The translations under genes and the position numbers were made by a program. A stretch of 58,300 nt of DNA, counting the filler, from Bipalium vagum (Eukaryota), in the NCBI GenBank assembly GCA_037834085.1. It is 2 parts of 2 records of this genome, joined end to end, with 100 filler letters (N's around TTAATTAATTAA, not from the genome) between each part and the next. Parts side by side here need not be neighbours in the genome. Positions count along the whole stretch, not along the records: positions 1 to 27,465 come from JBBMKC010089335.1; 1 more part is not named here. One strand, given 5' to 3'. How positions within the stretch are numbered: position 1 is the first letter of the stretch; each line of letters opens with the position of its first letter. This document shows, piece after piece, positions 10,001 through 13,000 of this stretch. A model generated the notes under the pieces. That model did not search any database. It was given only the letters and a program-made list of their open reading frames with translations, and was not told where the DNA came from.

Positions 10001-13000
10001 GGAATATTTGGTGGATTATGTTATTATCTTCTAACCATGTTAATGCTTTATGTGAATAATGGCAACTTGCGAAATCAGGCCAGAAGATAATGTTATCTTT
10101 ATGCTTTTTTGTGATGAATCTTTTTAATTTTGTAAGACATTTCTTAATATACACATCTGTTTTATTACTGCACAGTTGGATTCCTGAATGTACAGCTGGG
10201 AAACATCTTTTCAGATATTGCAGCCATACCAATACTTTGGGTACAAATTCAGCTTTACGAGTGAATCTAATATGATCTGTAAAATTTTCAATGTCATCAG
10301 CATACAATCCTTGATTTTGTGATGCATTACTCCAAGAAAAAGTAAAATATTTTTCATCATCTAGAATTATTTTGACATCCGAAGTAAAAAAAATTTCTTC
10401 TAAGGGATTCGCATTTCTTTCCAATTGTTTCTCGGTATATTTTGGAACAGGGACTCTTTTATGATATTTGACTTTACATTTGAGCAAATTTTGACTCAGT
10501 TTCTTTAGAAATGTGATATTTACTGCAAAGAAGACGATTGGATTGACCGATTTTGTCCTGCGAATCTTTTTGAAACTTGACCAGCTGTATTCCATTTACA
10601 ATCGGTGGCCTACCTGGTTTTTAAACCTCAGTTGCTGCTTCGCCATTTTCATATTTCCGAAAAATTTAATATAATATGTGGTGATTTCTTCTTTCAAAAG
10701 GTGTTATAAAATATTACTTCTTGAGTGTCGTCCAAGCATGGCAAACACTCTTCTACGTAATTCATTTTGTTGAGCGACCTTCATTATTAAATTTGAAATT
10801 TTCACTTAGTTTAAACAAACCATATATATATATAATAAAGAATAAGTTATATTAATATTCAGAATTTGAAATTGGTTGGTGCGTATATAAAACACACCAA
10901 CATTTTGTGCATCTACTTTATTGGCACCCGTTATAATTATTTTTATTAAATTTTAAAAAGTTATTTGAATAAAAAATTTTTAAAATATTCATGTTAAAAT
11001 ATTTTCTTTCAAATGTCGACTTTATTTCTCTGACTTATTTTGGATTCTCGAAACTTTCTCATTCATTTTTAATCTTAATATTTTTGGTTAATTTCTTGTA
11101 TATATCTACATTGTCCAAGATTTGTTTCAGACCGATTTTTTCTTGTACTAAAACCTTTAACCCCTAATTCAATTATCTTGTAATAAATGATCCGCGAGGA
11201 TCATTAAAAATTATTAACCAACGGTAATGTATCAATATTTCACTGCAACTTATTTATGTAGAAAGCAATTGAAAGTAGGAGCCGCAGTAGGAACTCACAA
11301 GGACGATTATATGCGAGTGAAAGCACTTATTGATGTGGGAGTAGATTTATTAGTTATGGTTAGTAGCGGAAAATGATACAAGGTGGTGACGATGCAATAT
11401 TGTCAATGATGCCTTTTATGTGGCTTATTATTAATTTGCTTGCTCTATGATTTTTGATTTCTACTTTTTGATGCTGCTCAATTTAGTGAAGATGATTAAC
11501 TAAAGCGACTTTATTTTGTTTAAGGCGGCAACTAATGGTCGGAGCAGCCGTCGCTACTCTTAACTGTGATTATGATCGTATTTCCATGATTATTCACAGC
11601 GGGGCTGACCTCATTGTCATAGTGAGCCGTAGTTAACTGTGTGATTGAAAAAGCAAGAGCATTTAGTGATCGTTGTTATGCATGCTTCTTATTGTTGTCT
11701 TGATCGTTTTTTTTCAATTTTCTTTCTCACATCATTAAGGATTCTTCACAAGGCAACAGTATTTACCAGATAGATATGATAAAAAACATCAAGAGCCATT
11801 ATCCATATGTTCAGATTGTTGGAGGAAATGGTGAAAGACTTTTAAGGACTTATAATTTTTTATTGATATGGGTCTGCTTTCAGTGGTAACTCAACAACAG
11901 GCTAAGTCACTTATTGATGCCGGTGTTGACGGTTTACGAGTAGGAATGGGTAGTGGATCAATTTGCATAACCCAAGAAGTCATGGCTGTTGGTCGACCTC
12001 AGGCCACTGCTGTTTACAAAGTATACGAAATCATGACACATGTCGAAAAGAGAAATTTATCGTCTAGCTCAGGTTAGTGAATATGCTAGGCACCACGACG
12101 TTCCAGTTATAGCTGATGGTGGTATTCAAAATGTCGGACATATAATTAAGGCACTTTCTTTGGGTGCAAACGCCGCAATGATGGGAAGCATGTTGGCCGG
12201 AACATCTGAAGCACCAGGAGAATATTTTTATGCTGATGGCGTGCGCCTGAAGAAATATAGAGGTTTTTTCTAACTTACACATCATCTCACTCATTTTAAT
12301 TTGATAATAGGTATGGGGAGTTTGGAGGCCATGACAGCCAACAAGTCTAGTGCAGTGCGTTACTTCAGTGAGAACGACAAGGTAATGGTAGCACAGGGTG
12401 TCAGTGGGAATATGTTAGACAAGGGTAGTGTCATGAAACTCATGCCGTATCTTGTTGCTGGGATCCAACATGGACTCCAAGATATGGGTGTTCGAGATCT
12501 GGTGCAGTTGAATGAAAAGGTATGTAATGGTGAATTGCGATTCGAACGTAGGACAACAAGTGCGCAAGTTGAAGGAGGAGTGCATAATTTACATTCGTAA
12601 GTATTTTTCTTTTTTTTTATTGAATACCTCTTTCCTTATATACATAATTATATATAATGTATGTTAACATACTTTCATTTTAAATATCTTAATAGGCAAT
12701 AAAAGTGTGAAGTTGGTAATACTTTTTTGGAATACCATTTTTAAAAATTACAAAATTTGATTACACTATCTGCGCTTGTTTATAGGTAAACAAGGTGTCT
12801 TAATCGAGGCTACCTTTAGATATGGTGACATGTGCATTTCACTGTCTTTCTCATTACAAACATGACTGATTCTTTCCGTAAGGTGTTTGTTTGTAGAAGG
12901 TCTATCTCTGTACGCATTAGAAAAGTAAGTATGACTCACCAGTGACCATAAATTCGAAGAACACCCAATGATTCCCTATGAAGTTAAACCGTTACACATT

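Follow-up and report, generated by a model that had tools for sequence, protein, structure and literature searches.

The window described here is a stretch of 58,300 nucleotides from the Bipalium vagum genome assembly GCA_037834085.1, made of two parts joined by filler, and its first part (positions 1-27465, contig C89335, 26.6% GC) carries a gene for IMP dehydrogenase (IMPDH). This gene is called gene A to distinguish it from a second IMPDH gene, gene B, elsewhere in the same assembly, which comprises 440 Mb in 272,664 contigs. Gene A holds two homologous copies of its exon 7, named 7a and 7b, one behind the other. They are rather likely to be tandem-duplicated homologous exons of a functional IMPDH gene that are used mutually exclusively as alternatives, and gene A probably makes two versions of the enzyme that differ at the nicotinamide adenine dinucleotide (NAD)-binding pocket. 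Mutually exclusive use is the simplest reading, since selection has maintained the coding sense of the two copies and the reading frame accommodates just one of them per mRNA.

The assignment of gene A to the IMPDH family comes from several comparisons. The exon translations match the Pfam profile PF00478 over profile positions 5-345, together with the CBS domain PF00571, and the exons align one by one to full-length IMPDH proteins in tblastn comparisons with two such proteins. The catalytic cysteine loop, the DSSQGN motif for NAD and IMP, the inserted CBS subdomain and the C-terminal flap region are all present. The gene coordinates given here start at the second coding exon, the first being located upstream of position 1053. 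The features of the locus are the following.

1071..12600, plus strand: gene A (IMP dehydrogenase), running from coding exon 2 up to its apparent stop, delimited with Pfam PF00478 and CBS and by exon-by-exon tblastn.
6915..7017, plus strand: exon 6, ending in GAT GAC AG (KDD followed by AG) before GTAAAT, with phase 2 into exon 7.
7018..11261, plus strand: intron 6, 4.2 kb, 25% GC, with a mariner/Tc1-like remnant and high-copy repeats inside.
11262..11358, plus strand: exon 7a, 97 nucleotides, the canonical-type copy, with His at position 253 and 26.6 Pfam bits.
11359..11524, plus strand: intron between 7a and 7b, 166 nucleotides, with a branch-point-like TTAAC about 27 nucleotides before the 7b acceptor.
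11525..11621, plus strand: exon 7b, 97 nucleotides, the diverged copy, with Leu at position 253, 47% GC and 17.9 Pfam bits.
11622..11739, plus strand: intron between 7b and exon 8, 118 nucleotides.
11740..11830, plus strand: exon 8, starting with DSSQGNS, with the DSS motif for binding the NAD ribose and with Tyr where the human enzyme has F282.
11880..12031, plus strand: exon 9, with approximate limits, encoding the catalytic cysteine loop.

A first-pass annotation of the window had described two exons of 97 nucleotides with AG/GT ends and equal phases, and direct reading of the sequence bears this out. The two copies lie 166 nucleotides apart between the same constitutive exons, exon 6 ending at 7017 and exon 8 starting at 11740. 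Exon 7a is flanked by an AG at 11260-11261 and the donor GTTAGT, and exon 7b by an AG at 11523-11524 and the donor GTGAGC; the phases are identical, 2 on entry and 0 on exit. The codon split over the junction with exon 6 reads AGA with 7a and AGG with 7b, and encodes arginine both ways. The copies align without gaps, and 16 of the 32 full codons encode the same residue, which together with the shared arginine gives 17/33 identical amino acids. About 19.8 of 22.3 synonymous sites differ (proportion of differing synonymous sites, pS, 0.89), and both the identity and the many synonymous differences noted at first pass are thus confirmed. Both exons match PF00478 over profile positions 91/92-122, 7a scoring 26.6 bits and 7b 17.9 bits. 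Their GC content (47% in 7b, 39% in 7a) resembles that of the other exons (34-46%) and not that of the introns (25-34%).

Only 7.7% of the 33-codon windows in the introns of gene A are free of stops. Between exon 6 and exon 8, 11 windows have the form AG, 97 nucleotides, GT; three of these are open, and two of the three are 7a and 7b. A BLOSUM62 scan of the same interval gives a score of 74 for 7a against 7b and at most 8 for the next-best window, while a control with the similarly sized intron of gene B gave maxima of 4-26 after shuffling. A chance origin of the resemblance between the two exons is excluded on these comparisons.

Local translation of the junctions shows that exon 6 followed by 7a and exon 8, or by 7b and exon 8, remains open. 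When 7a is joined to 7b, a stop appears at codon 13 of 7b, and when both exons are skipped, a stop follows after 10 codons of exon 8. Double inclusion and double skipping both run into early stops, and the one-or-the-other logic proposed earlier therefore stands. Since 97 nucleotides leave a remainder of one when divided by three, only mRNAs with exactly one exon 7 would encode the full enzyme; those with both copies or neither would be frameshifted, meet an early stop and be removed by nonsense-mediated decay (NMD). Steric exclusion between the two exons seems unlikely because the 166-nucleotide intron between them carries the proximal branch-point-like TTAAC. The pair shows the traits by which clusters of mutually exclusive exons (MXEs) are recognized: adjacent and homologous exons that agree in length and phase, canonical splice sites, and a frame that blocks productive joint inclusion or joint skipping, NMD itself being presumed. 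In a cross-species comparison, the route through frame shift and NMD accounted for exclusivity in 20/28 (71%) genes with validated MXEs (PMC5740500). From this arrangement we infer alternative splicing of the pair, its regulation, and the decay of the off-frame forms.

When aligned to the human structures 1b3o and 1nf7, exon 7 corresponds to residues 241-273 of human IMPDH2, its 32 full codons being residues 242-273. Two residues of the adenosine subsite for NAD, Thr252 and His253, fall within this stretch, and the human enzyme stacks the NAD adenine between H253 and F282 (PMC3469657). The cofactor adenosine subsite is the part of IMPDH that varies most between species and has been exploited by selective inhibitors (PMC3469657, PMC4427161). 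At position 253, 7a and the corresponding exon of gene B (B7) have His, whereas 7b has Leu; at position 251, 7a has Gly and 7b has Ala, and most positions of the helix 254-266 differ between the two copies. The products of 7a and 7b would differ at 16/33 residues of one strand-loop-helix-strand unit of the barrel. We infer a biochemical difference between the 7a form, which would keep His253, and the 7b form, which would carry Leu: the two are expected to differ in the handling of the NAD cofactor, in the response to adenosine-subsite inhibitors or in subunit contacts.

Gene B was found in a whole-assembly Pfam search on the minus strand of contig C216833 (11721-4883), with a 5' exon on contig C3874 (7314-7466). 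Its exons share 68-89% protein identity per exon with those of gene A, and the ratio of nonsynonymous to synonymous substitution rates (dN/dS) between the two genes is 0.03-0.08 where it can be estimated. Because its exons are so strongly constrained, gene B is taken to be a working gene. Exon 6 of gene B ends at 11082 and exon 8 lies at 5681-5592 (C216833, minus strand), with one exon 7 between them.

C216833 5882-5786, minus strand: exon B7, 97 nucleotides, with AG/GT ends and phases as in 7a and 7b; peptide RQLMVGASIGTHVCDYDRLNMIMHSEPDVIVI.

The B7 peptide is 66% identical to that of 7b and 41% identical to that of 7a, and 7b adjoins exon 8 as B7 does in gene B. The gap-free 5.2-kb intron of gene B upstream of B7 contains no 7a-like sequence in any frame, and its best other BLOSUM62 window scores 15, within the shuffled range. 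Searches of the whole assembly with both peptides recovered 7a, 7b and B7 as the only homologs of exon 7; a fourth candidate, on contig C223647, was a weak match and proved spurious. Gene B may be a paralog of gene A, or an ortholog from a co-assembled sister species. The two genes also differ in an intron of about 48 nucleotides (about 12263-12310), which splits the last two coding exons of gene A and is absent from gene B. A mariner/Tc1-like remnant is also found in the gene B intron that corresponds to intron 6 (C216833 about 6755-6200, minus strand).

Synonymous sites are saturated between the two genes, with a pooled pS of 0.755 for the exons other than exon 7, and their introns gave no local alignment beyond shuffled controls; a T-rich match downstream of 7b and B7, seen in the intron conservation scan, is marginal (p about 0.03). 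The gap-free alignment of exons 7b and B7 has a nucleotide identity of 72%, inside the range of the constitutive exons (68-79%), with 21/32 residues identical and the reading frame open. The proportion of differing nonsynonymous sites (pN) is 0.18 against a pS of 0.62, and the resulting dN/dS, an estimate proposed as a check at first pass, is about 0.16. The pN of 0.18 exceeds the pooled value of 0.10 for the constitutive exons. In a relative-rate test with 7a as the outgroup, the unique nucleotide changes number 12 in 7b and 10 in B7, and the unique amino acid changes 2 and 5, respectively; by these counts 7b has evolved no more rapidly than B7. In neutral simulations with at least 0.5 substitutions per site, the combination of at least 21/32 residues kept and no stop arose in fewer than 5 of 100,000 trials. 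Because 7b matches B7 gap-free while introns and synonymous sites are saturated, the duplication that gave 7a and 7b is concluded to be older than the split between genes A and B, and 7b is concluded to have been under purifying selection in gene A since that split. The argument for selection on 7b holds whether gene B is a paralog or an ortholog. An old exon duplication kept under purifying selection, as originally suggested, is in agreement with these results: a counterpart of 7b exists in gene B beyond saturated introns and synonymous sites, and 7b shows a low dN/dS and no acceleration, the evidence for 7a being of another kind, as described below.

The same figures bear on the possibility that only 7a is spliced, and that 7b is an unused relic of the duplication or a poison exon that lowers IMPDH output through NMD. 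This would be compatible with the canonical character of 7a (26.6 vs. 17.9 Pfam bits), with the replacement of His253 by Leu and of Gly251 by Ala in 7b, with the stop produced by joint inclusion, and with the lack of RNA evidence for the use of 7b. Neither a relic nor a poison exon needs coding sense, however, and 7b has kept 21/32 residues in an open frame, a dN/dS of about 0.16 without acceleration and an exon-like GC content while the introns were randomized. In addition, the strongly constrained gene B has a 7b-type exon as its sole exon 7, which indicates that this type supports a working enzyme, and the splicing of 7a alone is considered unlikely.

Of the two copies, 7a is nearest to the IMPDH of other phyla, with 13-17/32 identical residues compared with 11-13 for 7b, and with 16-17/32 identical to arthropod- and vertebrate-like IMPDH. 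It retains canonical residues and an exon-like GC content as signs of constraint, and it could not, on this comparison, have kept its similarity to other phyla as neutral DNA over the same time. The opposite possibility, that 7b is constitutive as in gene B and 7a is a leftover ancestral canonical exon no longer in use, would account for a gene B that works with a 7b-type exon alone, for the position of 7b next to exon 8 in both genes, and for a 7a donor (GTTAGT) slightly farther from consensus than that of 7b (GTGAGC). It is nevertheless improbable, since 7a is intact, with AG/GT ends, 39% GC compared with 25% in the surrounding intron, and the similarity to arthropod- and vertebrate-like IMPDH just mentioned; had it been unselected since before the split of genes A and B, it would have become unrecognizable like the introns, and only a very recent disuse would fit.

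Tyr257 is common to 7a, 7b and B7, and outgroups have Lys or Arg at this position. The exon-7 segment is single in an arthropod-like locus, in an AT-rich eukaryote locus and in a vertebrate-like transcript, and neither of the two genomic loci has an intron between the exon-7 and exon-8 segments. Because Tyr257 is shared by all copies and the exon-7 segment is single in those loci, the duplication looks lineage-specific, with a later loss of 7a from gene B, which retained the 7b-type exon only. Searches with the last exon gave an 89% match in an ENA metagenome and a 77% match on a 1-kb contig without exon 7, and a contig of Cichlidogyrus begins at the last IMPDH exon. Scanning JGI metagenome contigs with 7b-type motifs returned only two unrelated chance matches.

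A fusion of sequence from two organisms or haplotypes during assembly, which would make the tandem pair an artefact, could be suspected in an assembly so fragmented (272,664 contigs) and mixed (several types of COX1 and of small subunit (SSU) rRNA), in which 7b is closer to the gene B exon than to 7a, but this is very improbable because an independent Logan contig, built with a different assembler, spans 10840-12686 and thereby both exons with one differing letter and an even depth of about 26, because 7b is only 72% identical to B7 and so was not copied from the gene B contig, and because the introns flanking 7b are unlike those of gene B.

Several points weigh against mutually exclusive use of 7a and 7b. 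Taken alone, 7b falls under the Pfam cut-off (17.9 vs. 25.6 bits), and it replaces the adenine-stacking His. The evidence for selection on 7a since the split of the two genes is indirect, gene B being without 7a. Among public sequencing runs, the only one that contains the locus is the source of the DNA itself, and no RNA run does. No regulatory RNA structure was detected, the duplex energies between exon and intron segments (z from -1.2 to +1.4) being no different from those of shuffled sequences. The comparison draws on two genes from one assembly, without a dated phylogeny, and this assembly is mixed, containing two COX1 genes of flatworm type with 80.6% identity as well as arthropod-like COX1 fragments, so that gene B may come from another species.

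The mixed character of the assembly is visible in further markers. The two COX1 genes with the flatworm code, whose 80.6% identity refers to the protein, have 26.5% and 32% GC, and carry AAA at conserved Asn positions, as in genetic code 9. COX1-bearing contigs are C253947, C246471, C253320 and C4371, and the assembly also contains several nuclear COX1 copies in a degraded state, along with many distinct matches to SSU rRNA. For PGK and enolase, 2-3 AT-rich copies occur. The best named matches for enolase are cestodes and Macrostomum, and those for IMPDH include monogeneans, whereas a search with COX1 gave no named relatives. Provided that these contigs derive from the organism of the window, the COX1 code and the enolase and IMPDH matches make it probably a flatworm.

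Other observations concern the locus and its surroundings. A 15-nucleotide stretch in 7a (11326-11340) is 87% complementary to the acceptor of exon 8 (11725-11739), its AG included; compared with shuffled sequences this complementarity does not reach significance, and gene B lacks it. At the end of the gene, the IMPDH stop TAA (12595-12602 in gene A, around 4883 of C216833 in gene B) falls in both genes within the identical string CATTCGTAAGT, which can also be read as a consensus 5' splice site (G/GTAAGT-like). Both proteins end in LHS, without the usual YEKRLF-like tail, and no downstream mini-exon for such a C-terminal tail was found in a search beyond the stop. Mariner/Tc1-like transposase remnants lie on the minus strand at 9954-10595, in intron 6, and at 23296-24308, downstream of gene A. 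The part of intron 6 at about 9600-10800 has a depth roughly 5-15 times that of unique sequence, and very high-copy repeats are found at 8646-9033 and 12526-12700, with a summed contig depth of 5,000-49,000 compared with about 26 in unique sequence. A single-exon rhodopsin-family G-protein-coupled receptor (GPCR; Pfam 7tm_1) is encoded at 25877-26995 on the minus strand, 13 kb downstream of the IMPDH gene and on the opposite strand; its nearest copy in the assembly (contig C213042) is 51-54% identical. In the contig of Cichlidogyrus casuarinus, too, the last IMPDH exon is closely followed by an oppositely oriented 7tm_1 gene, whose receptor is only about 34% identical to the GPCR of the window. 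A run of 132 N at 25537-25668, just upstream of the GPCR region, represents an assembly gap or a masked stretch.

Tandem-duplicated homologous exons with mutually exclusive use are a well-known class (PMC3228551, PMC5740500, PMC8373072, PMC9741552). Exons 7a and 7b resemble the clusters that depend on frame shift and NMD (PMC3228551, PMC5740500) in their homology, equal length, same phase and a length that is not a multiple of three. The catalogues of such exons, however, have been validated by RNA-seq, and 7a and 7b were read from the genomic sequence. Exons 9 and 10 of PKM, which give the M1 and M2 forms, are tandem homologs that do not differ in length, and the mRNA includes exactly one of them. 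The comparison with this pair, drawn in the first-pass annotation, is reasonable as a description of how 7a and 7b would work: both cases concern a central metabolic enzyme in which the exchanged structural unit is in contact with a ligand site. In PKM, a residue that binds fructose-1,6-bisphosphate (FBP) differs between the isoforms (PMC9741552). The exchange in IMPDH would affect the NAD adenosine subsite and not an allosteric FBP site, and it occurs in what is probably a flatworm genome; moreover, the splicing, tissue pattern and regulators of PKM are known, whereas the splicing of 7a and 7b is deduced from the genomic sequence.

In vertebrates, the diversity of IMPDH arises from the whole-gene duplication that gave IMPDH1 and IMPDH2 and from alternative N- and C-terminal extensions, as in the retinal variants of IMPDH1. 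As in vertebrates, more than one isozyme per organism would be formed here, and genes A and B may act as paralogs, with B having fixed the 7b-type exon; unlike in vertebrates, an internal segment of the barrel would be exchanged within one gene. In the human MXE atlas, IMPDH is represented solely by a candidate at the N-terminus of IMPDH1, outside the catalytic barrel, which is consistent with the earlier remark that the known IMPDH1 variants alter the termini. A human and fly catalogue of tandem exons has no IMPDH entry, and full-text literature searches found no report of a mutually exclusive exon pair in the IMPDH catalytic barrel. The inheritance of an ancestral pair followed by the loss of one exon recalls the 'internal and external paralogy' of tropomyosin, as far as it is described in PMC9741552, where Irimia et al. 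2010 is cited, and exons 5a/5b of SCN-alpha (PMC12772994), in which duplicated genes or sister lineages inherited an ancestral alternative pair and one copy later lost one exon. The present case differs from both in that the two genes come from one mixed assembly and gene B could be either paralogous or orthologous to gene A. The chances appear evenly balanced that this is the first mutually exclusive switch in the IMPDH barrel, an ancient pair kept by selection that replaces His253 by Leu together with the adjoining helix and strand and yields two isozymes distinct in kinetics or regulation, while a sister gene or sister species has fixed the 7b-type exon.

IMPDH limits the rate of guanine nucleotide synthesis and is a drug target. 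If the two exons are used as proposed, gene A would provide a matched pair of isozymes for studying how residues 241-273 tune NAD binding, the response to inhibitors and subunit contacts, and would extend the few known cases of tandem exon substitution by a metabolic enzyme from outside vertebrates and insects. The comparison of gene A with gene B suggests that duplication at the level of the exon and at the level of the gene can replace each other, and the two genes would then be a natural example, from purine metabolism, of alternative splicing being traded against gene duplication. Were the organism a parasitic flatworm, differences specific to the isoforms could bear on drug targeting.

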